Positions 2,849-64,000 of a stretch of 64,000 bases of DNA are shown here, one piece after another. Source of the stretch: Pristiophorus japonicus (lineage: Eukaryota); contig NC_091984.1 of NCBI RefSeq assembly GCF_044704955.1, positions 211,048,001-211,112,000 on the forward strand, written 5' to 3'. Within the stretch, counting starts at the first letter, position 1. Every line of letters starts with the position of its first letter. A program made the position numbers and the translations under genes. The notes beneath the pieces were generated by a model, which worked only from the letters and a program-made list of their open reading frames with translations, was not told the DNA's origin and searched no databases.

Positions 2849-5743
2849 GAACTATGTGTCTTAATACAAGGAGTATCCGCAATAAGGTGGATGAATTAAT
2901 TGTGCAAATAGATGTTAATAAATATGATGTGATTGGGATTACGGAGACGTGGCTCCAGGATGATCAGGGCTGGGAACTCAACATTCAGGGGTATTCAACA
3001 TTCAGGAAGGATAGAATAAAAGGAAAAGGAGGTGGGGTAGCATTGTTGGTTAAAGAGGAGATTAATGCAATAGTTAGGAAAGACATTAGCTTGGATGATG
3101 TGGAATCTATATGGGTAGAGCTGCAGAACACCAAAGGGCAAAAAACGTTAGTAGGAGTTGTGTACAGACCTCCAAACAGTAATAGGGATGTTGGGGAGGG
3201 CATCAAACAGGAAATTAGGGGTGCATGCAATAAAGGTGTAGCAGTTATAATGGGTGACTTTAATATGCACATAGATTGGGCTAGCCAAACTGGAAGCAAT
3301 ACGGTGGAGGAGGATTTCCTGGAGTGCATAAGGGATGGTTTTCTAGACCAATATGTTGAGGAACCAACTAGGGGGGAGGCCATCTTAGACTGGGTGTTGT
3401 GTAATGAGAGAGGATTAATTAGCAATCTCATTGTGCGAGGCCCCTTGGGGAAGAGTGACCATAATATGGTGGAATTCTGCATTAGGATGGAGAATGAAAC
3501 AGTAAATTCAGAGACCATGGTCCAGAACTTAAAGAAGGGTAACTTTGAAGGTATGAGGCGTGAATTGGCTAGGATAGATTGGCGAATGATACTTAGGGGG
3601 TTGACTGTGGATGGGCAATGGCAGACATTTAGAGACCGCATGGATAAATTACAACAATTGTACATTCCTGTCTGGCGTAAAAATAAAAAAGGGAAGGTGG
3701 CTCAACCGTGGCTATCTAGGGAAATCAGGGATAGTATTAAAGCCAAGGAAGTGGCATACAAATTGGCCAGAAATAGCAGCGAACCTGGGGACTGGGAGAA
3801 ATTTAGAACTCAGCAAAGGAGGACAAAGGGTTTGATTAGGGCAGGGAAAATGGAGTACGAGAAGAAGCTTGCAGGGAACATTAAGGTGGATTGCAAAAGT
3901 TTCTATAGGTATGTAAAGAGAAAAAGGTTAGTAAAGACAAACGTAGGTCCCCTGCAGTCAGAATCAGGGGAAGTCATAACAGGGAACAAAGAAATGGCAG
4001 ACCAATTGAACAAGTACTTTGGTTCGGTATTCACTAAGGAGGATACAAACAACCTTCCGGATATAAAAGGGGTCAGAGGGTCTAGTAAGGAGGGGGAACT
4101 GAAGGAAATCTTTATTAGTCAGGAAATTGTGTTGGGGAAATTGATGGGATTGAAGGCCGATAAATCCCCAGGGCCTGATGGACTGCATCCCAGAGTACTT
4201 AAGGAGGTGGCCTTGGAAATAGTGGATGCATTGACAGTCATTTTCCAACATTCCATTGACTCTGGATCAGTTCCTATCGAGTGGAGGGTAGCCAATGTAA
4301 CCCCACTTTTTAAAAAAGGAGGGAGAGAGAAAACAGGGAATTATAGACCGGTCAGCCTGACCTCAGTAGTGGGTAAAATGATGGAATCAATTGTTAAGGA
4401 TGTCTTAGCAGTGCATCTGGAAAATGGTGACATGATAGGTCCAAGTCAGCATGGATTTGTGAAAGGGAAATCATGCTTGACAAATCTTCTGGAATTTTTT
4501 GAGGATGTTTCCAGTAAAGTGGACAAAGGAGAACCAGTTGATGTGGTATATTTGGACTTTCAGAAGGCTTTCGACAAGGTCCCACACAAGAGATTAATGT
4601 GCAAAGTTAAAGCACATGGGATTGGGGGTAGTGTGCTGACGTGGATTGAGAACTGGTTGTCAGACAGGAAGCAAAGAGTAGGAGTAAACGGGTACTTTTC
4701 AGAATGGCAGGCAGTGACTAGTGGGGTGCCGCAAGGTTCTGTGCTGGGGCCCCAGCTGTTTACATTGTACATTAATGATTTAGACGAGGGGATTAAATGC
4801 AGTATCTCCAAATTTGCGGATGACACTAAGTTGGGTGGCAGTGTGAGCTGCGAGGAGGATGCTATTAGGCTGCAGAGTGACTTGGATAGGTTAGGTGAGT
4901 GGGCAAATGCATGGCAGGTGAAGTATAATGTGGATAAATGTGAGGTTATCCACTTTGGTGGTAAAAACAGAGAGACAGACTATTATCTGAATGGTGACAG
5001 ATTAGGAAAAGGGAAGGTGCAACGAGACCTGGGTGTCATGGTACATCAGTCATTGAAGGTTAGCATGCAGGTACAGCAGGCGGTTAAGAAAGCAAATGGC
5101 ATGTTGGCCTTCATAGCGAGGGGATTTGAATACAGGGGCAGGGAGGTGTTGCTACAGTTGTACAGGGCCTTGGTGAGGCCACACCTGGAGTATTGTGTAC
5201 AGTTTTGGTCTCCTAACTTGAGGAAGGACGTTCTTGCTATTGAGGGAGTACAGCGAAGATTCACCAGACTGATTCCCGGGATGGCGGGACTGACCTATCA
5301 AGAAAGACTGGATCAACTGGGCTTATATTCACTGGAGTTCAGAAGAATGAGAGGGGACCTCATAGAAACGTTTAAAATTCTGACGGGTTTAGACAGGTTA
5401 GATGCAGGAAGAATGTTCCCAATGTTGGGGAAGTCCAGAACCAGGGGTCACAGTCTGAGGATAAGGGGTAAGCCATTTAGGACCGAGATGAGGAGAAACT
5501 TCTTCACCCAGAGAGTGGTGAACCTGTGGAATTCTCTACCACAGAAAGTAGTTGAGGCCAATTCACTAAATATATTCAAAAGGGAGTTAGATGAAGTCCT
5601 TACTACTCGGGGGATCAAGGGGTATGGCGAGAAAGCAGGAAGGGGGTACTGAAGTTTCATGTTCAGCCATGAACTCATTGAATGGCGGTGCAGGCTAGAA
5701 GGGCTGAATGGCCTGCTCCTGCACCTATTTTCTATGTTTCTAT
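2849..5743 (+). mobile_element. Young 5'-truncated CR1 LINE (ORF2 + 3'UTR, no ORF1)
   Basis: Starts at the ORF2 start with no ORF1 upstream. The short 3'UTR ends in the repeated tail TTCTATGTTTCTATG, abutting Harbinger Myb-gene sequence. Confidence 0.9.
2854..5652 (+). CDS. CR1-clade LINE ORF2 (APE endonuclease + reverse transcriptase), uninterrupted 932 aa
   Basis: APE motifs GITETW, GDFN, LDWVL and SDHN; RT motifs [24 protein letters not shown] and FADD; CR1-type C-terminus RGHSL...RNFFTQRVVNLWNSLP. Confidence 0.96.
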   Translation: MCLNTRSIRNKVDELIVQIDVNKYDVIGITETWLQDDQGWELNIQGYSTFRKDRIKGKGGGVALLVKEEINAIVRKDISLDDVESIWVELQNTKGQKTLVGVVYRPPNSNRDVGEGIKQEIRGACNKGVAVIMGDFNMHIDWASQTGSNTVEEDFLECIRDGFLDQYVEEPTRGEAILDWVLCNERGLISNLIVRGPLGKSDHNMVEFCIRMENETVNSETMVQNLKKGNFEGMRRELARIDWRMILRGLTVDGQWQTFRDRMDKLQQLYIPVWRKNKKGKVAQPWLSREIRDSIKAKEVAYKLARNSSEPGDWEKFRTQQRRTKGLIRAGKMEYEKKLAGNIKVDCKSFYRYVKRKRLVKTNVGPLQSESGEVITGNKEMADQLNKYFGSVFTKEDTNNLPDIKGVRGSSKEGELKEIFISQEIVLGKLMGLKADKSPGPDGLHPRVLKEVALEIVDALTVIFQHSIDSGSVPIEWRVANVTPLFKKGGREKTGNYRPVSLTSVVGKMMESIVKDVLAVHLENGDMIGPSQHGFVKGKSCLTNLLEFFEDVSSKVDKGEPVDVVYLDFQKAFDKVPHKRLMCKVKAHGIGGSVLTWIENWLSDRKQRVGVNGYFSEWQAVTSGVPQGSVLGPQLFTLYINDLDEGIKCSISKFADDTKLGGSVSCEEDAIRLQSDLDRLGEWANAWQVKYNVDKCEVIHFGGKNRETDYYLNGDRLGKGKVQRDLGVMVHQSLKVSMQVQQAVKKANGMLAFIARGFEYRGREVLLQLYRALVRPHLEYCVQFWSPNLRKDVLAIEGVQRRFTRLIPGMAGLTYQERLDQLGLYSLEFRRMRGDLIETFKILTGLDRLDAGRMFPMLGKSRTRGHSLRIRGKPFRTEMRRNFFTQRVVNLWNSLPQKVVEANSLNIFKRELDEVLTTRGIKGYGEKAGRGY

Positions 5744-7367: not shown

Positions 7368-8516
7368 TCAGCTTCTTCCATTCAAGTCCATTATGAGCTG
7401 ACAACGTGCGGCTCTTGCTCCTGCGGCATCTCCACGCGGCCTCCCCCGTGGATGGGATGGCTGTCCAATCGGTGCCTCACTAGACTCCTCTTCCTCCTGA
7501 CGTGGTCCTGCAATCCCCACTGGCAATGCCTGGCCTCTCATGATGGCCAAGTTGTGGAATATGCAGCACACCACAATGAATTCGGAGACCTGTTGAGGGG
7601 AGTATTGAAGGCTGCCTCCAGAGTGGTCCAGGCATCGGAAGTTCTTCCTGAGCACCTCAATTGTCTGTTCGATGATGTTGTGGGTGGCTGCATGGCTCTC
7701 ATTGTAGCGCTGCTTGGATTATTTGATGGGGTTGCGGAGGCTAGTTATGAGCCAGGTGGCTAGGCTGTATCTTTTGTCCCTGACCAGCCAGCTGTGCCTT
7801 TTCCTTTGTCGCTGAAACATTCGTGAGACACTGCTCTCATGCAAGATGAAAGCATCATGTGCGCTCCCTGGATAGCGGGCATTAACTGTGAAGAAGCACT
7901 GCGTGTGGTCATACACCAGCTGGACGTTTAGGGAGTGGTATCCCTTTTGGTTTCTGAATAGTTCTGCATTGTGGAATGGTGCTCGTAAGGCCAAGTGTAT
8001 GCAGTCAATGGCTCCTTGAACCCTCAGGAAGCCTGCAATTCCGCCAAAACCACATGCTCGCTCATTCTGGCTGTCCCTGCTCATTGTGAACTTTAAGAAG
8101 TCCATTCTGCCAGTGTACAGAGCCTTTGTAATGTGGCGAATGCAGCGATGTGCAGCGTATTAAGAGATGTTGCATATGTCCCCTGCTGCTGCCTGGAAGG
8201 AGCCGGAGGCATAGAAGGCCAGCGCCACAGTCACCCTCACTGCGACGGGCAGCGCAATCCTGTTGTCACTGTAAGACTGTAGGTCTGCCTGTAGGAGATG
8301 GCATATCTCTTGTCAGCTTTCTCACACACTGCTCCTTAGAGAACTTGAGGTATGAGCATTGGTGCCTGTAAATCCGTGGGGGGTAAGCCCTCCTCCCCAG
8401 ACATCTTCAGTCTCTCTTCATCCGTGGGCCGACCTGGCTAAGAGCCCTTCTTCTAGCTTGACCTGTCTGGCAATAGCATGGAGCGTGATACACTGGCGAA
8501 CTAGTAATGCCCCCAT
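7368..8516 (-). pseudogene. HARBI1-like DDE transposase, frameshifted
   Basis: VQGAIDCIHLALRAP, NQKGYHSLNVQLV, ARYPGSAHDAFIL, FRCLDHSGGSLQYSP and CCIFHNLA are diagnostic PIF/Harbinger transposase motifs. Confidence 0.92.
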
Positions 8517-10992: not shown

Positions 10993-12775
10993 AAGATACT
11001 AATAAGATATGCTGGCCTTTTTATGGGTTTTGTGATCCCGACAGCAAAATGTGGTACTCTTAATATAATTCTTGATAAATGCCTATCATTAATGAAGATA
11101 CAAAGGAGGGAAGGTCTGGAAATGTATTTTTTTCTGTGATCAGTGAGTAACGCATGGAGAGTATTGGAGATATATTACACAGGGTGCCTCTGACAGTCTA
11201 GGCGCAGTTTAAGTTGTGAACATTAAATATTTTATTTCCAGGACTACTGAAAAAATAACTGCCATCAAATAAAGAACATTGAGTACTTCTAGTGTAATTT
11301 GTACTGCAGGAACTGTTACTACAGCGGATGACACTGAATTATTCATTAAGACAGAGTAGAAACTAGATACAACTATTTTGGTGCAGAACATGTGAGAACT
11401 ATGGTGGAAGAATTCCTCTATGTGCTAAGTGGAAAAATAATCAAAGACATTTATAAAGGATACATTTACAAATGTATTGCACTTGATTATTTTATTTTCT
11501 GGCTCAAATAGTTGAATGCACCGTAGCAAGGTGCATCATCAGTGAGAATGGTGATTTAAAAACCTCTACCTACCCATAGTGCAAATTAAAAAGTGCAAAA
11601 GAACATCTTAAAACTATGTACAGCAGCTCGAATGTCGTTATTTCAGTCCAGTTTCTAATCCATAAATCCACAGGTCGAACTGTATCCATATAAAGTTTAT
11701 TTTAGTTGGTTTGATTTTGGGAATTAATTTTAGCCATATTTGATGCCTTTTCATCATCCTTCTCAGCCATGATGTTTTTGATCCATTACCACAACCACCT
11801 TCAGTGCTGCCAATCTTTATTCACCAGATATGAGGCTCAATTTTCCCATGATCTGTGCCGTTTTTTTGGCGTGCACTGCTTTTTTTGGCCTAAATTAAAA
11901 TATCCAAGTTTCCCCAAAGATTGTGTGCTAGCATAACTCAGTTAGTAATGATTATATTTAGGTCAGGTTTCTTTTTGCGGCATAAGGAGCGTAACCTGAT
12001 ATCTGCGCCAGTTTTTCACATTTATGCAAGTTTGGCCAACTTTCATTTTTCCAAGGACGGTGTATGTGACCGCTCCCAAAAAACCTTCTGGGCACTTAAG
12101 AAAAAGCAGCACACATAAAAAAAAAATCGCAGCTGAAAGACGCCATTGTTTTTAAGGCGAAGTTTTGGAGGGAGTCAAGAACACATTAAATATGCATCAA
12201 GCTTAATTTTTTTCAAACTTAAAACACAGAAAATGGAAGTCTAATGCAATTCTTTAATTTTGGATTTTTTTCAAAGTGCCACGCCACCACTGAACGTCTC
12301 CAAACCGGGCTCGAGGGTCGGAGCGTTGGTTGGCAGAATCGATCCATCTCCCGGATCCAGGGGCTCGGCTTCAAAAGAAGCCCGGGGGGTGGTGGGGTGG
12401 GCTGGAATCTGAACTGATGCGCTGAGAACCCTTACACTATGCAGCAGAATCAAAAGAAGCCTGGGCGGTGTGTTTTCCGAGCCCGTGTCCGGGTGAGGGA
12501 GCTATTCTGCTGACCGACCCTCAAGTCTGGTGAGGAGACGTTCGGTCGGTGGTGGGGTGGTACTTTGAAAAAAATCTAAAATTGAAGAATTGCATTTGAC
12601 TTAGTTGCCCCAAATGTCCTCATTTGAATGCTTAGTTTCCCGTTCTAAGCAAGCCTATTGCGCATGCGCAGACCTGGGTGTGGTCCATACGAGGACATCA
12701 ACCTTGGGGAGAGACAGAACAAAGAAGCTTGTCCTGCCTGCCATTTTGAGCTTCTTGCAAAGGTACAATTTAATC

Positions 12776-13925
12776 ATAGGGACAATACTGGCAATGCCAT
12801 ACCTCGTGCAAGCCTTCTGCATGATGGTGCTGAACAGGAGACGATTGATTCAATGTCATCGCATGAGGAACCTCAGAGCGCGTAGGATGATGGGCAGGTG
12901 GCCTTACCCACATTGGGTATATCGAGGGAGGCGTTCATACTTGCACCTGAGTGATGCAGACTATGTGCGAAGGCTGTGTTTCCACAAAGAAGTTATAACC
13001 GAGATCTGTGAGTTAGTAAAAGCAGACCTGCAACCTAGAAGCATCAGGAGGACTGCTTTGTCAGTTGAAGTGAAGGTTACAGCTGCACTTTCATTCTATG
13101 CATCTGGATCATTCCAGACCATAACTGGGGATGTGTGCACCATTTCTCAACATGCAACACATATCTGCATTTGGCAGGTGACTGCTGCACTACATGCCCG
13201 GAGCAATGATTACATAAAGTTCCCCATGACCACCCAGGCAATGCATGAAAGGGCTGTGGGCTTCTCCAGGATTGTTGGCTTTCCAAAGGTACAGGGCTGC
13301 ATTGATTGTACCCACATCGCCTTGCGAGCACCTTTGGAGGATTCCGAGATGTACAGGAACAGAAAGGCTTCCACTCAGTTAATGTGCAGCTCATGTATGA
13401 CTATATGCATCGCATCCTGTCAGTTGATGCGATATAGCGCGCTCGCGTAGGATGTATCTGCCATGTTTCAGCAGCAGCCAGAAGGGCAGAGCTGGCTGCT
13501 GGAGAGGCAAAGGGTATGGCCTCGCCACCTGGCTCATGATGCGCCTATGCGTAACCCGGATGGAAGCTGACCAGGAATACAACATGTCGCACATTGCGAC
13601 GTGCAGCATAATAGAGAGGACCATTGGCATCTTGAAACAGCAGCTACTTGCAATACTCCCCTGTGATTGTCGGTCAGTTCACTGTTGTGTGCTGTATGCT
13701 GCATAACTTAGCCATCATGAGGCAGCAGCAGCTGATAGTAGAAGACCCACCTGAGGTGAGAGTGGCTGATGAGGAGGAAGATGCCGATGATGACGAGGAG
13801 GATGTGGAAGCCATGACACTATCTGAACCTGGAGCACGACGGCAGAGAAGGCGGGCCGTCGTGCCCCTTTAACGATTGCTTGAGCCTTGCGCCAGCAGCT
13901 CATCCGTGAACGCTTTGCTGCCTGA
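12776..13925 (+). pseudogene. HARBI1-like DDE transposase with frameshifts/deletions
   Basis: LSVEVKVTAALSFYASGSFQ, GFPKVQGCIDCTHIALRAP, YRNRK, KGYGL, IIERTIGILK, CCMLHNLA and an acidic C-terminal tract. Confidence 0.93.
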
Positions 13926-14259
13926 AGGCTCAGCGGCAACTATTCCAAATGGACTATGTTTACTGTTTGGATCTGTTCTGTAATGTTGTGTTCTGTTAAT
14001 GGAACAAATAATTGAAATGATTCAGTTATAATTTAAAATATATTTTATTCAAAAGTTTAACATTTGTTTGTACTTAATTTAACTTTAAAGTTTGATACAA
14101 GAATATTTTAATTAAAGTTTTCAGTTAAGATCACTTTAAAAACTTTTAAACTTGTAAATTTACATAACTTATAAAAAAACTTTTAATTTGAGAACAGTTA
14201 CAACAGTAACAATAACAACAGCAGCAGCAAAGAAAGGCTGCACCCATCTCTCCTTCACC

Positions 14260-15955
14260 TTATTCTAAGACTGCCTGCTGCGCTTGGTCTTGGAAACTCC
14301 ACCCCTGCCCGCAGGTGGTGGCGCAGCGATCCTCATGTTGGTACCAAGCTTATTCTTCTAAAAATCTTCTTGATGGGGATGGGGGGACGGGGAGCCGGGG
14401 GAGGGGACAGGCAGTAATGTGGCAGGCCCGGCTTGGGCCTCTTCAGAGGCTGGTATGGGGATTGGAGTGGCAGTTAATTCTGTCAATGGGCGCGGGATCT
14501 GGGCGTGTTCCCTTATTTCAGCAGCTAACTCCAACATTTCCTCCCTCATGTTCGCCGACAATGTTTCAACTACCTGCAACACTACCTGCCCCATGTTCAC
14601 TGACAGCGAATCAGCTATCTGCGACATTCCCTCCCTCATGTTCCCAGATAGTGTTCCCATTTCTCGCGAGAGTCTTGTTACTTCTCCCGACAGTCCTGAT
14701 ACCTCATCACCCACCCCACTGATGGTGTCCAAGAACGATCGTGTAAGGTCAATGCTCTCCACACACATTGCCATCATCTTAACCACATTTGTTAGATCCT
14801 GCACCTCAGGAGAGCGCTGTTGAGCTCTCCTTCCCCTCCTCACCCTGGGTGTGGCTCGCTGAATCCCACTGGGACCCGCAGCTTCAGATGGTGGGGCCCT
14901 GGGTATGCCTTGCTGCATCCCACTGGGACTCACAGCCTCAGATAGTGTGGCCCTGGATGTGCCTCGCTGCATCCCATTGAAATCCCCAGCCTCTGGAACC
15001 ATGGAATGTCCCACCAACACTTGTACCACTCAGGAAAAGGCCTGGCATCTCAATGGGTGACACCTACACCTCCGCCAGAGTGAGTACAACAATGTGGGCT
15101 TCATCCATCACCTCCCCCTCCTCCCCCCTCCATGCTCTTGGTCTGGAAGATAGGATTAGAAGATGTTCTCCTCTTTCTCGTCCGTGTCTGAATCCTCTTC
15201 TGCATCGGCTTCAGCCTCGTCAGGGTTGGCCTCAAGTTCTGCAAAATATAACAGAACAGACAAATGGTTAGCAACAGAGGAGGAGGTAGGGTGGCATGAG
15301 TAGGCACACACAGTGCAGGCAGCTTGGCTCATTTGAAGGACCATGATGAATGATAGCACATTGCATCAACCGAAGCGTAGCTGACGGAGACATCCCCATG
15401 AACCGAAGCATGTCTAGCCCGCGCAGTACTTACATTTAGGAAACCCAGACTGTGGAATTTGCAGGACTTGTCGTCTCTCTCTCGAGTGTGGGCTCAGCTG
15501 TGCAGTGGTGGTTGCTTTTCTCCAGACAGGATCCATCAAAGCAGCGACCCTCTCTTCCAAGGGGGGTCAGTGGGTGCAGATTTGCCGGGCCTCCTCCTGT
15601 TCGAGTTCTTTCCCTTTTGTTGTGTGCCACCTTCCTCTGCAAAGATGAAAATATAACTTTTTAAGAGAGGGTATCTTTCTGCTGGGTGGGTCATATCCAG
15701 ATGGTCACATTTACAATTGCAGTTCCATTGAATAAATGAAAATATTACTTCCACCTCCAGACCTCGGTGTGGTCATCATTGCACAGTAATCTTGTGCATG
15801 TTAGTTCGTGTTTCTTCATTTCTTTTGGTGAAACTTTTATGTGACCTCTGCTGGTGTCCAGCTCATGCCATCTGGCCTCAATTACAGTAGCGAGTGCTTC
15901 CACTTCATCCTGTAAGAAATTCTTGCTCCTTGAACCGCATTGCATCTTATATTGC
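14260..15955 (-). pseudogene. Harbinger Myb/SANT-like partner gene (spliced), decayed
   Basis: RSKNFLQDEVEALATVIEARW (SANT-like helix 1); RKVAHNKRERTRTGGGP exon after a TTTGCAG acceptor; acidic exon after TGCTAACCA...TTTTGCAG; coiled-coil C-terminus in ORF 14358-15029. Confidence 0.82.
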
Positions 15956-16381
15956 AGCTCCGATTTTTCCAATGATTCACGCACAACTGGGTCTTTAAAA
16001 TGGCCAAATGCAGACCGGGTGATGGGCATGCGTGCCCATGGCAATCATGTCAAAAACATCCTTTTTTTCCCCTGCGAATGTGAAGAAGGGGGAGCGGGGG
16101 GATTGTTTTTCCGGTGCAGATATTAGGCTCCATCCCCCGAAGCTAAAGGACAGGCAGCACGGCGCCAAATTTGAAAAATAGAACGGGAAAACTTGCTAGT
16201 TATTTTTTTTTGTAGTAGTCAGGGCCAAAAAAAATGGGCGTAACTCTTGCAGTACACCAGAAAACGGCACTGGGGAAAATTGAGTCCATGGACTGCAGTG
16301 CTACCATAATATACCTTGCTGAACATCTTAGAAGCACAAAAATTTCCCAAAGGGAGCAGTTCATTTTTAATTTTCACACAG

Positions 16382-30179: not shown

Positions 30180-30272
30180 CATTTGACTTATTTTGTTCTC
30201 AATATCTTCGGAACATTTATATTGCTTTAGTTCTTCTGCCATTTGCCAATTGGCCTCCATAAGACCTGCAAT
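30180..30272 (-). CDS. Internal exon of the zinc-finger/coiled-coil gene (93 nt)
   Basis: TTTAG|ATT...ATG|GTGATT, phase 0/0; IAGLMEANWQMAEELKQYKCSEDIENKISQM continues the heptad pattern. Confidence 0.85.
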
Positions 30273-30942
30273 CTAAAGCAATTTACATGAACAGTTTTTC
30301 AGCAAGTTACACAAATCATTTTGCACACAAGGAGTGAATTGGAAACTAATTCAAGGCACATCGATCCATTTTTGTTTAACTATTAACTTATTGGCATTGC
30401 TACTGAAGCTAGTATAGGAAGAACAGAGAAAAGAAAAATACAGGCTGAAATCACAAATGAAAATGAGAGAATGCCTGTTTGTTTTTGTCATTAATGACCT
30501 ACTAACAAAATCAATACTGCCAATTTGATGTGTTTGACTTTGTTTGTAATAATTGGCCACTCAATGGGCTCAAAATTGGCCAGAAGTTGCCGGGTTTTTT
30601 TTGGAGCAACTTGATTTTTCTGGAGTATCTTAAAAATCCACATTTTGCACATTCAATTTGCACCAGTGTAAGTGAGTTAGTTAGGATTTTTTTAGTTTCA
30701 TTTTTTTTTTCCCCAAAAGGGAGCGTTACCAGCCACCTACGCCCATTTTGGTCATTTAGGTCACTTTGGCCAGCTAATAGTTACTCCAAGCTAACTTAGG
30801 CCAGCGTATATGGTTACTTGTGAAAATCCTTGTGGAGAATTAAGAAATCAGTGCAGGCAGGTACATCGGAGGCCAGCAGAACTTAATGACTTGACTAAAG
30901 AATGTGAATAGGATCAAACAGCTATACAGGACATCATATGAC

Positions 30943-30994
30943 AAACTTCGCAAAGTTAATTTACTATAAAACTTCGCAAAGTTAATTTACTATA
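30943..30994. repeat. Perfect 26-bp tandem duplication inside the Harbinger-type element
   Basis: AAACTTCGCAAAGTTAATTTACTATA x2. Confidence 0.95.
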
Positions 30995-31109
30995 CAACAG
31001 AAGCATTCATGGAAGCTTAAACTACAAAAATAAAAGTAGTAAAGAGACAAAAATATCCAAATAAAAAAAAAAAAGTCCTACCCTACCTTCTGCTTCAGCC
31101 CGGGAACAT

Positions 31110-31710
31110 TACAGATTACTATAAACACTGACAGCAGCCAATGACAATCAATCAAACCAAATGAAGATCCAGAATGGGGATTGCTGCTGAATGAATCCTC
31201 CCAGCGATGCAGCAAGTCCAGATTCCACTCCCAGGGATCTTCACTTCGGGATCAGCCTCAGGCCGGGGCTGATAAGTTCGAGGATGATTCTCCTTTTTCA
31301 GCAGGGTTTGCTGGGCTGTAACCAGATTTCTTCTCTCCTCCTCTCTTCTTCTACATACCACCACCGATGACCAGAGCAATCAGGGCAATGGCAGCAATCA
31401 CAATTCCAACAATCAAACCAAGATTTGTTCCCTTTAGAGATCCTGGAGTCACTCGGAACGTCCCTTCCTAGTCTCGGTTCTTCACTCCTGTGTTGTCACT
31501 CTGCTCATACTGACAGGAATAGGTGGCTCCATCCTCGGACTCTATCTCAGCCCATCTCGTCAGCTGGTAAGTGTCATCGTCGCTGGGCAGGATGCCACTG
31601 GATTCCGTGTCCATGATCGGCTTGGGATTTCTCAGGAGGGTGACTTCGATATCATAAGGGTAAAAGCCCATGACGAGGCAGGAGAGTTGGGTCGGTTTAA
31701 TATTTGACCA
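31110..31710 (-). pseudogene. Processed (intronless) MHC class I heavy-chain fragment: alpha3 Ig-C1, connecting peptide, TM, cytoplasmic tail, partial 3'UTR
   Basis: One frame reads LSCLVMGFYPYDIEVTLLRN...GILPSDDDTYQLTRWAEI...YSCQYEQ...RD*EG...NLGLIVGIVIAAIALIALVIGGGM*KKRGGEKKSGYSPANPAEKGESSSNLSAPA-TGA(31260-31258). Premature TAGs at 31470-31468 and 31353-31351 fall where class I heavy chains usually have Trp. Confidence 0.9.
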
Positions 31711-32294
31711 CTCGGCCTGGGATAGGGATGGGACGCACATAGATATGCTGGGGGCCAGGAGTTACTGCGCATGCACGCACACTCCAACGCGCATGTGCAG
31801 ACGTCCCAGCACTGTTTTCAGCGCGGGACGCTGGCTCCGCCCCCGATGCGACTGGCCACGCTGCGCGAAGACCTGGGAGAGGCCGGTCAGCGGCCAAAGT
31901 CGGGACGTCTTTATTCGGCGCGCTTGGAAACGTAGAAAAGCTGCACAACTCAGGTGAGTTTGCCAAAAATTGGCATGGGCCAATTTTGAGCCCAATAGGA
32001 AATCAAGTCAGTTCACAATTCTTCTGTTCTCAGTCTGCATAATGCCTGCAGTACTGCTGACTAATTTGTTATGCGTTTCCATTACTTTCAGTTTCTGATT
32101 TCCAAAATTTGTCATCTTTCTTCTTAGACATATCATAAATAAAGTAACTTGTGCAGGTATTTACAGAAACTGTCCCTTTGACAGTTAAATAAAGTCAGTA
32201 AGATTTGCTCCAGTCTGTGAACATTGCCAAAATTTCTAAAACATGTCATACTAGAAATAGGTTAGCACTCACTGGTGGTTGTTGTGTTACATAC

Positions 32295-32432
32295 CTGGTC
32301 CTTTAGTTGTTGGATTTCTATGTGCAGCCTGCGCTCAGTTTCTGCTTTCTCTACCCGAAGCTGCTGATTCTGCTGGTGTAGTTCTAATAGTTGTTTTTCT
32401 ATTAGCAGATTCTGATCCAAAGTTTCATCACT
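32295..32432 (-). CDS. Internal exon of the zinc-finger/coiled-coil gene (138 nt)
   Basis: TCTTTCAG|AGT...CAG|GTATGT, phase 0/0; SDETLDQNLLIEKQLLELHQQNQQLRVEKAETERRLHIEIQQLKDQ (coiled coil). Confidence 0.9.
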
Positions 32433-32795
32433 CTGAAAGATTCAGATAGTAATATATACTTATGTCTAATCTGTATAAAGCACATAATATGAAGGCCTGG
32501 AAGAAAGTTGTAATCTTGGATTTTGTGACTTTATCAAAGGACCACTCCAATACAAATTTTGGTCGAACACCAATTAGCTACCAATCAGCAGAAGTTAGTA
32601 TGCAAATACTTGCTCCTCTCTATCCCAGATTAGTATATTCAAGATAAAAAGTTGTAATCTCTGTTCTACAGACTAATTCAGGGAGGCCTGCCTTCAGGGT
32701 ATCAGATACAAAATGCTGATATCCCTTTGATTGTGAAGTATGCAAGAAATGGAGGTATAGTTCTCAGATCAATCATTTACTGACAATCTTATCTG

Positions 32796-46861: not shown

Positions 46862-47943
46862 GGGCCCAAGTTTCCACATGATTTACACCTGATTTTTAGG
46901 AGCAACTGGTGGAGAACGGACTATCTTAGAAATCGCAATTCTCCACATTTTTTTTTCTGCAGTTCTAGTCAGGTAGAACAGTTCTACTTTGGAACAGAAT
47001 TTTTTCTTCAAAAGGGGGCGTGTCCAGCCACTGATGCCTGATTTCAAAGTTTCCACAGTGAAAACGTACTCCAAACTAAGTTAGAATGGAGCAAGTGAAG
47101 ATTTTTGTAGAACTGAAAAAACCTGTTCTACACATTAAAAAATCAGGCGCAGGTTACAAATTAGGCGTCCAGAACGAGGTGGGGGGGGACGGAAGTCATT
47201 AAATTCTATAATAAATCCTTATTTATACTTCTACAAATATTATACAAATAAATCCAATCTGAATAAACATTTATAAGCAAAGAAAAGATTAAATAAACCA
47301 TCTTCCTACCTGTGTGAAAGTGCTTCAGGCACGGAGAATTCTGCAGTGGGGGGGGGGGGGGGAAAGGAGGCGCCCGTTCTTCCCGCGGTGGGGGGGGGGG
47401 GGCAGAGGAGGCGTTCTTCCCGTGGGGGGGGGGAAAGAGAGAGGAGGCGCCCGTTCTTCCCGCGGGGGGGGGGGGGGGGGGGAGGGAGGGAGGCGCCCGT
47501 TCTTCCCGCGGGGGTGTGTGGGAGAGGAGGCGCTCGTTCTTTCCCGCCGGGGGGGGAGGGGGAAGGAGACAGTGAGAAGGCCCCAAGTGCTGATGGCAAT
47601 GTGCTTTTATTAAAAAAATGTTCAAAAATTAAACAGCTACAAAGAGCTACAAAAATGGCCGAGTGCCAATGTTTCCTTCACATTGCGCGTGCGCGAACGC
47701 TCCAATGCGCACGCGCAGCATTGCCGGCAGGGAAAAAAACTAATTTAAATAGTACCCGCCCCCTCCCACTTACAAAATCGGCGTCAGTGTAGGCTCCGCC
47801 CCCCTGGGCGCCGCGCCAGGCAGACAAGGAGCTGCAGAACGCTCCAGAATCGCGATTTTTTTTTTAGGCGCCGTTTTAGGCGAGAAAAACGGGCGCCCAG
47901 CTCGGAGGGGCGCCCGTTTTTTATCATGTGGAAACTTGGGCCC
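46862..47943. mobile_element. Young Harbinger-type MITE with internal G-rich tandem array
   Basis: Perfect 21-bp TIRs GGGCCCAAGTTTCCACATGAT; TSD ATT (46859-46861 and 47944-47946). Confidence 0.92.
47346..47565 (+). repeat. Tandem array: GGAGGCGCCCGTTCTTCCCGC units separated by poly-G runs
   Basis: About five units read directly; very strong G-quadruplex potential. Confidence 0.9.
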
Positions 47944-52259: not shown

Positions 52260-55200
52260 AGGTGGGGAGAGCTCTGCAGTGTGACATCACAGGTGAGGCA
52301 GGTAAGTGATTGGTAGTGATTGTGGGCTAAGTTTTTATTTTAAATTAACATATCGCATATAACTAAATTCTAAAAACTTACCTTTATTTATTTAACTAAT
52401 TTAATAAACCATATAAAAAAAGGTAAATACTTTGATTAACACTAAACTAATTAATTAAATAAAATAATGGGAGAACAGGAGATGTGTTGCTGCTGCAATG
52501 TGAGCTTCTGGACGTTTTGGTCCAGGGCGACTACATCTGCGGTAAGTGTCTGCGGCTCGATGAACTTCGGCTCCGAGTTGAGGAGCTGGAGTCCGAGCTG
52601 CAGACATTGCGAGACATCAGGGAGGGAGAAAGTTACCTGGACCTTTTGCTCAAGGAGGCAGCAACACCCTCTAGAGTAAATACTTTAGAATTGACACGTG
52701 GTCAGGGACAGGATGGTGTGACTGGGAGTGAGGCAGGTATGGGGATCCAGTAGGTAGTATTGCAGGAGCCTCAGTCCCTGTACTTGTCCAATAGATCTGA
52801 GGTTCTTGCAATCCTTGTGGACAAGTGTGCAGACTGTGGGGTGGACGAGCAGATTGACCAAGGCAGCGTGGTGCAGAAAACCATTCAAGTGGGGGGAGTA
52901 AAGAGGAAGGTGGTTGTAGTAGGGGACAGTATAGTTAGGGGGATAGATAGGGTTCTCTGCAGCCAAGAGCGTAGGTTCTGAAGGCTGTGATGCCTACCCG
53001 GTGCCAGAGTAAATGACATCTCCTCCGGGCTGGAGAAGAACGTGGAGTGGGAGGGGGAGGATCCAGTTGTCGTAGTACACGTAGGTACCAATGACATAGG
53101 TAGGACTAAGAAAGCGGTTCTGCTGAGAGAGTTTGAGCAGCAAGGGTCTAAATTGAAAAGCAGAACCACAGAGGTAATAATCTCTGCATTATTACCTGAG
53201 CCACGAGCAAATTGGCATAAGGTCAATAGAATTAGGGAGATGAATGCGTGGCTCAGTGGTTGGTGTGGGTTTCGATTCGTGGGGCACTGGCACCAATACT
53301 TGGGAACGAGAGAGCTGTTCCGTGGGAACGGACTACACCTGAACTATGCTGGGACCAGAGTTCCAGCGAATCGAATAACTAGGGAGGTAGACAGGGCTTT
53401 AAACTAAATAAGGGGGCGGGGGGGAAAGAGGAGGGTCCCAGTGGAGAGAAATCTAGAATGCTAGAGAGAAAAGAAAAAGGAAACAATGCAGAAAAGTGAT
53501 TGTGGTAAGGATAACCAGATTATGTCAGGAAGGGACAGAGCATACAAACAAAAGAGTGCACTTACAAATAAGGTTCAGGTAAGAAAAAAATAGCGATTAA
53601 ACAAATAGGGCTATAGTACAAAATAATGTTAAGATGTCTAATAATGTTAAAAAGACAAATCTAAAAGCACTGTATCTGAATGCACGAAGCATCCGTAGTA
53701 AGGTAGACAAATTAACAGCGCAAATAGATGCAATTACGGAGACAAGGTTGGGAACTGAATATCCAAGGATATTCGATATTTAGGAAGGACAGGCAAAAAG
53801 GAAAAGGGGGTGGTGTGGTGTTGTTAGTAAAGGATGAAATCTGAGCAATAGTGAGAAAGGATACTGGGCTCAGAAAATCAAGATGTAGAATCAGTCTGGG
53901 TAGAGCTAAGGAGCACCAAGGGGCAGAAAACATTGATGGGAGTTGTCTATAGGCCTCCAAACAGTAGTGGTAATGTCGGAGATGGCATCAAACAGGAAAT
54001 TAGAGAAGCGTGTAACAAGGGTATTACAGTAATTGTAGGTGACTAATCTACATATAGGCTGGCCAAACCAAATTAGTAATAATACTGTGGAAGATGAATT
54101 CCTGGAATGTGTACGAGATGTTTTTTTAGACCAGTATGTTGAGGAGCCTACTAGGGAACATGCTATCCTAGATTGGGTATTGTGCAATGAGAAGGGGTTA
54201 ATGAACAGTGTTGTTGTGTGGGGAACTTTAGGGAAGAGTGACCATAACATGATTGAATTCTTTATTAAGATGGAAAGTGAAGTAGTCCAATCCAAAACTA
54301 GGGTCCTAAATCTAAACAAAGGAAACTACAAAGATATGAGGAATGAATTGGCTATGATAGATTGGAAAGATTCATTAAAAGGCATGACGGTGGACAGGCA
54401 ATGGCTACATTTAAGGAACGAATGCATGAATTGCAACAGATATACATTCCTTTCTGGCGCAAAAGCACAAAAGGAAATGTGGCTAGCAAAAGAAATTCAT
54501 GATAGTATTAGATCCAAAGAGGAGTCATACAAAGTTGCCACAAAAAGTAGCAAGCCTGGAGATCGGGAGCAGTTTAGATTTCAGCAAAAAAGGACCAAGA
54601 GATTGATTAAGAGGGAAAAAATAGAGTACGAAAGTAAACTTGCAAGGAACATAAGAACCAACTGCAAAAGTTTCTACAAGTATGTAAAAAGAAAAAGATT
54701 AGTGAAGACAAATATAGGTCCTTTACAGTCAGAAGTGGAAGAATTTATCATGGGGAACAAGGAAATGGCAGAACAACTAAATAAATACTTTGGTTCTGTC
54801 TTCACAAAAGAGGACACAAAAATGCTAGGGAACCAAGGGTCTAGTGAGCAAGAGGAGTTAAAGGAAATTATTATTAATAAGAAAATAGTGCTGGAGAAAC
54901 TAATGGGACTGAAAGCTGATAAATCCCTAGGGCTTGATAATTTGTATCCCAGGGTACTAAAAGAGGTAGCCATGGAAATAGTGGATGCAATGGTTGTCAT
55001 CTTCTAAAATTCTATAGATTATGGAGCAGTTCCTGCAGATTGGAGGGTGGCAAATGTAACCCCACTATTTAAATAAGGAGGGAGGAAGAAAAAATAGGGA
55101 ACTACAGACCAGTTAGCCTAACATCAGTAGTAGGGAAAATGCTAGAGTCTATTATAAAGGATATGATAACGGGACACTTAGATAATATCAACGGGATTAG

Positions 55201-63957: not shown

Positions 63958-64000
63958 GGGCTCAATTTTCCACAATGCCATTTTTTGCCGTATTTGAAGA
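63958..64000. mobile_element. Left TIR of another Harbinger-family element running off the window
   Basis: AAT|GGGCTCAATTTTCC, the same TIR type as 11833-16287. Confidence 0.65.

Follow-up and report, generated by a model that had tools for sequence, protein, structure and literature searches.

How an intron-free fragment of an MHC class I sequence came to lie in the middle of a DNA transposon is the question raised by a 1428 bp unit in the sawshark Pristiophorus japonicus. The unit occupies positions 30566-31993 of the window, which is the whole stretch of 64,000 nt of contig NC_091984.1 that was analysed. It had initially been annotated as a Harbinger-like element that had captured a spliced class I mRNA. 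In all probability it is a Pack-type element with terminal inverted repeats (TIRs) and a dead class I filler. The source of the filler is a separate matter, and genomic DNA and cDNA are weighed below as its template.

Structure of the element

The class I segment, referred to here as the cargo, is flanked by two arms (Table 1). The perfect 16 bp TIRs and the AAT target site duplication (TSD) that the initial annotation described are both present. The repeat search returns a TIR pair of 17 nt rather than the 16 nt of the TIR proper because the edges of the TSD are complementary. An A-run at 31063-31074 had been said to be on the wrong strand for a poly(A) tail of the cargo; it is indeed arm sequence, within the left arm, and its strand is opposite to that of the cargo. 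A search of the element against Rfam gave no match.

Table 1. Features of the Pack-type element and of the intron that holds it (positions in the window)
Feature	Position	Strand	Basis
Host intron, 2022 nt, holds the whole element	30273-32294	-	RNA-run joints
TSD, left copy, AAT	30563-30565	.	Direct reading; identical to 31994-31996
Left TIR, GGGCTCAAAATTGGCC	30566-30581	+	100% complementary to 31978-31993
Left arm, non-autonomous element	30566-31106	+	Contig depth; likeness to elements at 46862 and 11833
Private 2 x 26-nt perfect tandem duplication in left arm	30943-30994	+	Repeat search, family D1
Cargo, intron-free MHC class I fragment, 602 nt, truncated at both ends, replaces ~27 nt	31107-31708	-	Cargo-less joins; ends of class I contigs
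Class I 3'UTR, first 151 nt, cut within the UTR	31107-31257	-	RNA contig
Cytoplasmic tail GGEKKSGYSPANPAEKGESSSNLSAPA and the gene's own TGA stop (31260-31258)	31258-31341	-	27/30 identical to P0159
Connecting peptide and TM segment, EGTFRV...LIVGIVIAAIALIALVIGGGM*KKR	31342-31466	-	30/38 identical to sawshark P0160 cluster
Second in-frame TAG, Trp in relatives	31351-31353	-	Frame reading
Partial alpha3 (Ig C1-set), SNIKPTQLSC to KNRD*, without the first 12 exon codons	31467-31707	-	Pfam PF07654, E 1.7e-12
In-frame TAG at the conserved Trp ending alpha3	31468-31470	-	Relatives have TGG
Right arm, GC-rich, GCGCATGCGC-like and GC-box-like blocks	31709-31993	+	Depth; blocks conserved with element at 46862
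Right TIR	31978-31993	-	Pairs with 30566-30581, 16/16
TSD, right copy, AAT	31994-31996	.	Direct reading

The arms belong to a family that is very abundant in P. japonicus and undetected in the related species compared. Summed contig depths, which are rough figures, amount to 3e4-2e5 for the left arm in the DNA run, against 10-25 in the unique flank, and reach 1.2e5 for the right arm. In the related species the left arm has a depth of 0 to ~6, with at most one contig, and the right arm is absent. Members of the family that carry no cargo are found in both the DNA and the RNA runs. In these, 26-27 other letters separate 31106 from 31709 (from 31708 in the RNA run); canonical members have ~27 nt at the slot that holds the 602 nt cargo in the copy at 30566-31993. 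The canonical backbone is a MITE of ~830-850 bp.

Relatives within the window are distant. When the element is compared with the window by blastn at default scoring, the self-match is the sole hit; looser scoring is needed to reveal the likeness of 61-63% between its left arm and the left ends of two other elements, at 46862 and 11833. The arms had been considered homologous to those of the element at 46862-47943; the homology holds in this remote form, with 61% identity across a 297-nt part of the left arm (E 9e-14) and conserved blocks in the right arm. The same element had also been taken as cargo-free, which it is not, since its middle contains a G-rich tandem array. Pfam searches of the 4.45-kb relative at 11833-16287 detected neither a transposase nor a Myb domain.

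Superfamily placement

In the PHIS superfamily, PIF/Harbinger elements have the TSD TWA, and ANT is the TSD of the Pangu group, whose TIRs have GG or AG as their first letters (Han et al. 2015, Mob DNA 6:12, PMC4482050). The TSDs read in the window are AAT at the element under study, ATT at 46862/47943, ATG at 11833/16287 and a further AAT, and the TIRs start with GGGC or AGGC. The TWA motif of PIF/Harbinger proper is thus not found. The two AAT duplications and ATT agree with ANT, and ATG does so incompletely. Because of its TIRs and 3-bp ANT-like TSD, the MITE family can be placed in the PHIS superfamily, where it would be Harbinger-like in the broad sense, and the Pangu group appears to be a better fit than Harbinger proper.

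As in other PHIS MITEs, a 3-bp A/T-rich TSD and GG/AG TIR starts are accompanied by an open reading frame of the DDE_Tnp_4 type in the window. This Harbinger-type transposase frame (Pfam, E 1.4e-15) lies at 7722-8159 on the minus strand. It accounts for one part of the earlier statement that Harbinger transposase and Myb genes with related TIRs occur in the window. The other parts were not recovered: no Myb domain was detected among window open reading frames of at least 85 aa, and a search for TIRs like those of the MITE around the 7722-8159 frame found none. The sawshark element differs from the PHIS systems in that no autonomous partner with matching TIRs has been identified.

The MHC class I cargo

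The cargo is a fragment of the class I family and not a gene. Its limits were originally estimated as ~31110-31710 on the minus strand; the strand is correct and the limits are now refined to those in Table 1. The alignments of class I contigs end at 31105 and 31708. As the arm ends at 31106 and the class I alignment begins at 31105, the two overlap by 2 nt (AA) at one junction. On the other side, the first 12 codons of the alpha3 exon are absent from the cargo, and a splice-site origin of its 5' end is thereby ruled out.

One continuous frame of alpha3, connecting peptide, TM and tail had been proposed. The order of the domains and the frame are confirmed by alignment with shark class I proteins as far as their C-terminus, but the frame is not open, being interrupted by TAG at 31470-31468 and at 31353-31351. 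At 31469, 12 DNA contigs and the RNA contigs have C, which restores TGG, and the T of the window has a depth of 16.5, about single copy. All contigs compared at 31352 have C and hence TGG. The alpha3 portion matches many class I chains in the PDB. The limits given for the connecting peptide/TM exon derive from differences between Heterodontus isoforms. The tail terminates at the same residue as in full-length class I proteins.

The 3'UTR, put at ~150 nt in the initial annotation, measures 151 nt. Its end lies inside the UTR, because class I RNA contigs continue beyond the 3' end of the cargo; a 663-nt RNA contig (depth 936) spans 31105-31635 and then has at least 134 nt of unrelated letters past 31105. 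At the opposite end, the first 11 residues of the open reading frame (MCVPSLSQAEW) are encoded by the arm. A length-limited protein search with the 90-aa frame formed by this arm-coded start and alpha3 found no short protein.

The closest proteins in UniRef are class I proteins of P. japonicus itself. The alpha3 portion is identical to sawshark P0159 at 65 of 79 residues. Over the connecting peptide and TM, the P0160 cluster is nearer than P0159 (30/38 versus 25/38 identical residues). Whole-cargo identities by tblastn are 76% to P0159, 70% to P0160 and 67% to Squalus acanthias Q8HWH7. Nurse shark UAA (PDB 6LUP type, P0169) is much more distant, with 36/79 in alpha3. The predicted resemblance to shark class I is well founded, in that the alpha3 and tail motifs of the cargo recur in its nearest proteins, all of them shark class I. 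Against the two sawshark protein types the cargo looks mosaic, with alpha3 and tail nearer to P0159 and the connecting peptide/TM nearer to the P0160 cluster; neither type is clearly the parent. Although alpha3, connecting peptide/TM and tail are colinear with P0159, the P0160 cluster and Q8HWH7, the leader, alpha1, alpha2 and the first 12 alpha3 codons of the full-length sawshark and Squalus proteins are lacking and two stops are present. The set that makes up a class I gene, i.e., leader, alpha1, alpha2, alpha3, TM and tail in an open frame, is accordingly incomplete.

The cargo is ~90% like the dominant class I mRNA. Among the differences listed, the best supported number 29 in the cargo versus one in the arms, and the arms look younger than the cargo; 1358 contigs are at least 99% alike. 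The 29 comprise 16 GC>AT transitions and 2 AT>GC. Strand-specific (APOBEC-like) editing is rejected as an explanation of the TGG>TAG stops, as GC>AT changes are on both strands (9 and 7). With two nonsense codons and GC>AT-rich decay, the class I fragment is dead; it has no evident function.

Origin of the cargo

Capture of genes by Pack-type DNA transposons is well documented in plants. The sawshark unit shares with plant Pack-MULEs and animal Pack-TIRs the plan of a non-autonomous element whose TIRs and TSD are intact and whose middle derives from a host gene. Its TIRs match at 16 of 16 positions and the TSD is AAT on both sides. The middle has C1-set/class I homology, and the same arms occur without it in cargo-less members. 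The parental sequence is present elsewhere without TIRs, as class I RNA and DNA contigs pass 31105 and 31708 into non-arm sequence. The initial reading, a TIR transposon with a host-gene fragment as its middle, is upheld in these respects.

Formation of animal Pack-TIRs by gap filling has been documented (Tan et al. 2021, Nat Commun 12:4280, PMC8277862). The survey reports 370 cases in 100 genomes, most of them single-copy, and intron-free cargos were deliberately excluded to avoid retrocopies (PMC8277862). Further points in common with animal Pack-TIRs are a parent located elsewhere without TIRs, features expected of repair by gap filling or by a switch of template, with minimal microhomology, and a position within an intron of a host gene. 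The sawshark case differs in that its cargo is intron-free, a class discarded by the survey (PMC8277862), and in having an MHC class I cargo in a shark host. In addition, several loci may exist, in contrast to the mostly single-copy cases of the survey. Window-type letters at 31478-31498 have a depth of 150-220, versus 10-25 for unique sequence.

A full account, to which about an even chance may be given, is that of a Pack-type MITE whose middle was filled by repair from an intron-free class I template, with genomic DNA favoured. A break would have occurred in the middle of a MITE copy. Repair with filler DNA would then have cost ~27 nt of the canonical middle and brought in 602 nt, copied from an MHC class I template that had no introns; the copied part begins within alpha3 and stops within the 3'UTR. 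Genomic DNA is the most likely template, in preference to newly made cDNA; it would have been that of a class I copy lacking introns or of an earlier, already decayed version of the chimera. The process would be the ordinary gap filling or template switching of Pack-TIRs. The anatomy of the element, the abundance of its family, the existence of cargo-less members, the limits and decay of the cargo and the splicing of the host gene are observed, and from there on the repair mechanism, the use of DNA over cDNA and the mobility of the chimera are inferred.

A different source for the filler is possible, if rather doubtful: a spliced class I mRNA, reverse-transcribed (with cDNA or RNA as template), may have been used directly to fill the break, after which the chimera transposed. 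No intron interrupts the cargo at the alpha3/connecting peptide boundary or at two tail-exon junctions deduced from Heterodontus isoforms. Its sequence is colinear with that of a strongly expressed mRNA contig, whose depth in the RNA runs is 936-1248; class I transcripts are plentiful, and a LINE reverse transcriptase frame is present in the window. Moreover, two DNA contigs stop 4-7 nt short of the predicted alpha3/connecting peptide boundary, as an exon of an intron-bearing gene would.

The initial annotation had argued that an intronless cargo implies cDNA capture. This does not hold as stated, since other contigs also cross the alpha3/connecting peptide boundary without an intron. A 632-nt DNA contig that aligns with 31179-31560 does so with 55 differences and unrelated ends, and another DNA contig runs 20 nt past the end of alpha3 without an intron; neither represents the locus under study. 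A further DNA contig, with a depth of ~198 and the letters of the dominant mRNA, spans ~31438-31529 as estimated from distances to the contig ends. Because intron-free class I DNA is found elsewhere in the same genome, loss of introns is not diagnostic of mRNA capture. Three DNA contigs that end near the boundary do not prove an intron-bearing parent: one of them is the contig that continues for 20 nt beyond the exon end, and a cluster of mismatches at 31464-31498 could also have halted the alignments.

The combination of ~90% likeness to the mRNA with consensus-like arms is more easily reconciled with copying from DNA that was already old and decayed than with a recently made cDNA. A DNA template is favoured, with cDNA as a possibility; should the true parent have an intron between alpha3 and the connecting peptide, the template was cDNA. 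It had been allowed from the outset that a parent with fused exons would mean capture of DNA, and this may apply here.

Insertion of cDNA or other filler at double-strand breaks and endonuclease-independent LINE insertion both leave a truncated, transcript-like insert without poly(A) or TSD, together with a small target deletion. The cargo resembles these products in its truncation, in having neither poly(A) nor a TSD of its own and in the small deletion of target sequence. It differs from the products of break capture in that an intron-free DNA template was available, so that reverse transcription need not have made the sawshark copy.

A broader proposal is that the middle of the MITE family is a preferred slot that repeatedly takes up reverse-transcribed mRNAs of immune genes, and that the class I version was spread by transposition. 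This is unlikely on present data. If true, cDNA pieces from genes of adaptive immunity would be carried about by a vertebrate DNA transposon. Should several loci share the same junctions, they would constitute a multi-locus Pack element of a shark that carries alpha3, TM and tail of an MHC class I sequence, and would offer a clean system for the origin of the chimera, from a DNA or a cDNA template, and for its spread. As it is known, the single copy at 30566-31993 is a dead intronic fragment with no sign of use, and its worth is that of one data point.

It is very unlikely that the cargo is an ordinary LINE-made processed pseudogene that landed by chance inside a MITE. The class I sequence is intron-free and 5'-truncated, as such pseudogenes are, and LINE open reading frames lie nearby. 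On the other hand, neither a poly(A) or LINE tail at the 3' end nor a flanking duplication is found at the cargo, whose end falls inside the 3'UTR, at least 134 nt before the end of the mRNA contig, and ~27 nt of the target were deleted instead. The initial annotation had recorded the absence of poly(A) and of a cargo TSD and had set a LINE-style retrocopy aside; both points stand, and the missing ~27 nt of canonical sequence are in keeping with replacement by filler DNA.

The host intron and expression

The host gene, which is expressed, encodes a coiled-coil protein, and the entire element resides in one of its introns. In two contigs of the RNA run, 3431 and 3081 nt long, 30272 is followed directly by 32295, a joint not seen in the DNA run. 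The skipped segment ends in CT..AC, which is GT..AG on the minus strand, with a GTATGT donor and a TTTAG acceptor. The observed RNA joint skips the whole element.

Use of the class I piece, either by exonisation into the coiled-coil gene or by expression of a truncated Ig-TM protein from the element, is highly improbable. The cargo and the host gene are on the same strand, and an acceptor-like pyrimidine tract with AG is found in the arm ~18 nt upstream of the cargo. Nevertheless, the cargo has two in-frame stops, and the sole host splice joint seen bypasses the element. Window-type letters are nearly absent from RNA (6.5 of a depth of 942), and the RNA-run contigs contain no reads that join the host exon at 32295 to arm or cargo.

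That the assembly fused a class I read to MITE arms by mistake is the least credible explanation of all: none of the contigs listed spans either arm-cargo junction by at least 31 nt, but private letters of the cargo, such as T at 31469, are present in the DNA run at a single-copy depth of 14-17, and near-perfect contigs cover both flank-TIR junctions. Within the left arm, parts of the 30943-30994 duplication are missing from one RNA-run contig.

Structure of the element and limits of the cargo

The 1428-bp element at 30566-31993 is bounded by perfect 16-nt terminal inverted repeats (TIRs), GGGCTCAAAATTGGCC at 30566-30581 and its complement at 31978-31993. The repeat finder gives a 17-nt TIR; the edges of the target site duplication (TSD) happen to be complementary. 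By our estimate, chance alone would give a perfect 16-nt inverted pair within 2 kb only ~5e-4 times, and the ends are therefore considered real. The TIRs and TSD of the initial annotation are thus borne out by direct reading and by repeat search.

Read evidence comes from contigs, whose depths are rough. Run X4 behaves as genomic DNA and X7 represents DNA from a related species; X5 and X6 are taken as RNA because a host splice joint is present there and missing in X4. No N runs were met. In X4, the arms (30566-31106 and 31709-31993) have a summed contig depth of 3e4-2e5, versus 10-25 in the unique flanks, and so represent a highly abundant family. X7 has little or no arm sequence (depth 0 to ~6), and the flanks are present there with ~85-90% likeness. 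The right arm displays promoter-like blocks at 31709-31960 (+), a GCGCATGCAC/GCGCATGTGC pair and a GGCTCCGCCCC GC-box, which are conserved in the element at 46862 and are followed near the TIR by CAG/GTGAGT. From its sequence, this arm looks like a promoter with an outward-facing splice donor.

In contigs of cargo-less family members, both DNA and RNA, 26-27 other letters separate 31106 from 31709 (from 31708 in the RNA run), which defines the cargo as 31107-31708 (602 nt, minus strand), replacing ~27 nt. Class I contigs align from 31105 onward and so share 2 nt (AA) with the arm. The minus-strand middle encodes an Ig C1-set domain (Pfam E 1.7e-12) that matches alpha3 domains of class I, MR1 and CD1 in the PDB. 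The same frame continues through a connecting peptide, transmembrane segment (together CP/TM), cytoplasmic tail and TGA. Cargo-encoded sequence begins with SNIKPTQLSC, 12 codons into the alpha3 exon, the first 11 residues of the open reading frame being arm-encoded, and its colinearity with shark class I proteins extends to their last residue. The continuous class I frame initially described holds as to this order and phase, but two in-frame TAG codons (31470-68 and 31353-51) stand in place of Trp and the frame is not open. The dominant class I RNA contig (663 nt, depth 936, ~90% alike to the cargo) extends at least 134 nt past the cargo 3′ end. The cargo thus ends inside the 3′UTR and not at a poly(A) site, in agreement with the reported lack of poly(A) there.

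Features in the window and contigs aligned to it
Feature	Position	Strand	TSD	Details
Studied element	30566-31993		AAT, both flanks	
Distant relative	46862-47943		ATT	21-nt TIRs
Related element, 4.45 kb	11833-16287		ATG	termini AGGCTCAATTTTCCC / GGACTCAATTTTCCCC
Another element of the group	63958 onward		AAT, one side only	start GGGCTCAATTTTCCACA; runs off window end at 64000
Coiled-coil exons	32295-32436 and ~30180-30272	minus		LIEKQLLELHQQNQQLRVEKAETERRLHIEIQQLKDQ / IAGLMEANWQMAEELKQYK, joined in RNA contigs
DDE_Tnp_4 ORF	7722-8159	minus		E 1.4e-15
Harbinger/PIF-type transposase remnant	7371-8159	minus		DDE_Tnp_4 + Plant_tran, split over two ORFs
LINE ORF2	2854-5652	plus		932 aa, intact-looking; endonuclease + reverse transcriptase
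Integrase ORF of LTR element	1263-1892	plus		rve + H2C2
ORF with GDSL-lipase/OSK-like domain	52991-53404	plus		E 3e-6; as in some LINE ORF1 proteins
Record 5 (X4 contig)	31179-31560			55 differences; intron-free class I piece, flanked on either side by unrelated sequence
Record 6 (X4 contig)				reaches 20 nt beyond alpha3 end
X4 contig, depth ~198	~31438-31529, from distances to contig ends			dominant-mRNA letters SGQAGVKTRDW, P0159 type

Relatives and decay of the cargo

The proteins closest to the cargo are Pristiophorus japonicus UniRef entries, followed by those of Heptranchias and Squalus; sequences of the nurse shark UAA type are much less similar (36/79). One sawshark protein, P0159, matches in alpha3 (65/79) and the tail (27/30), and a cluster of six near-identical proteins around P0160 matches in CP/TM (30/38). 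The cargo is a mosaic of the two sawshark types, neither of which is clearly the parent.

Both stop positions are TGG in every relative. The window letters at private positions 31469 (first stop), 31625 and 31670 have a depth of 14-17, as for a single copy. Among the 29 cargo differences listed, 16 are GC>AT transitions versus 2 AT>GC, on both strands, a pattern of ordinary neutral decay. The arms (826 nt) show one position (31847) among the best-supported differences listed, 1358 contigs are at least 99% alike, and TIRs and TSD are perfect, whereas the cargo carries the minority letter at at least 17 positions and is ~90% like its best relative. This age mismatch, which hinges on which differences were listed, is consistent with a cargo that was passed on or copied from an older copy, either chimeric or decayed. 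Transposition or ectopic gap repair between members of the family could have brought it in. At 31478-31498, window-type letters reach a depth of 150-220, with an expressed share of 6.5/942; the depth suggests that ~10 other genomic copies, almost unexpressed, may share this derived motif.

Template of the cargo

Judging from Heterodontus isoforms, the related gene of that shark has one exon each for alpha3 and CP/TM and two for the tail, and the cargo is without all introns so implied. The loss is informative only if the template had those introns. Other class-I-like contigs in X4 cross the alpha3-CP junction without an intron, and record 5, a different genomic locus with its own breakpoints, indicates that several independent intron-free class I fragments exist in the genome. 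Records 3 and 4 end 4-7 nt before the predicted alpha3-CP boundary, which could reflect an intron-bearing gene or a mismatch cluster. The template is concluded to have been intron-free, as the initial annotation had it; the spliced cDNA proposed there is not implied, given the intron-free class I DNA elsewhere in X4. We lean toward a DNA template, with about an even chance of being correct, and regard a cDNA template as the less likely alternative.

In animals, 370 Pack-TIRs were found in 100 genomes; single-copy forms are attributed to gap filling and multicopy forms to fork switching plus transposition (PMC8277862). The present element is a further animal Pack-TIR, unusual in cargo and host. 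It differs from those surveyed in its intron-free cargo, a class that the survey left out (PMC8277862).

Host gene

In RNA contigs of 3.1-3.4 kb, 30272 is spliced to 32295; the stretch left out is bounded by CT..AC, or GT..AG on the minus strand. The element thus lies inside a 2022-nt intron of an expressed coiled-coil gene and shares the strand of this host gene. No splice joint into arm or cargo was seen in contigs of the runs examined, and fusion of the host coiled-coil protein to the Ig domain is unsupported in these runs. No working function of the element is indicated.

Classification

TWA duplications mark PIF/Harbinger proper; ANT duplications and GG/AG termini mark the Pangu group, which belongs to the same PHIS superfamily (PMC4482050). 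TIRs of the related elements in the window begin with GG or AG. Harbinger-like is acceptable in a broad sense; Pangu-like is the better fit. Harbinger transposase and Myb genes with related TIRs had been proposed in the window. The DDE_Tnp_4 ORF is present, but matching (GGGCYCAA-type) TIRs were not found around the transposase remnant, nor was a Myb domain by Pfam in ORFs of at least 85 aa. The 4.45-kb element resembles the studied one at the left end (63% to its left arm) and showed neither transposase nor Myb in ORFs of that size. The distant relative, formerly considered cargo-free, does not have an empty middle: it contains a G-rich array of tandem repeats with periods 46 and 77 (47346-47514), which points to a generally variable middle in this group of elements.
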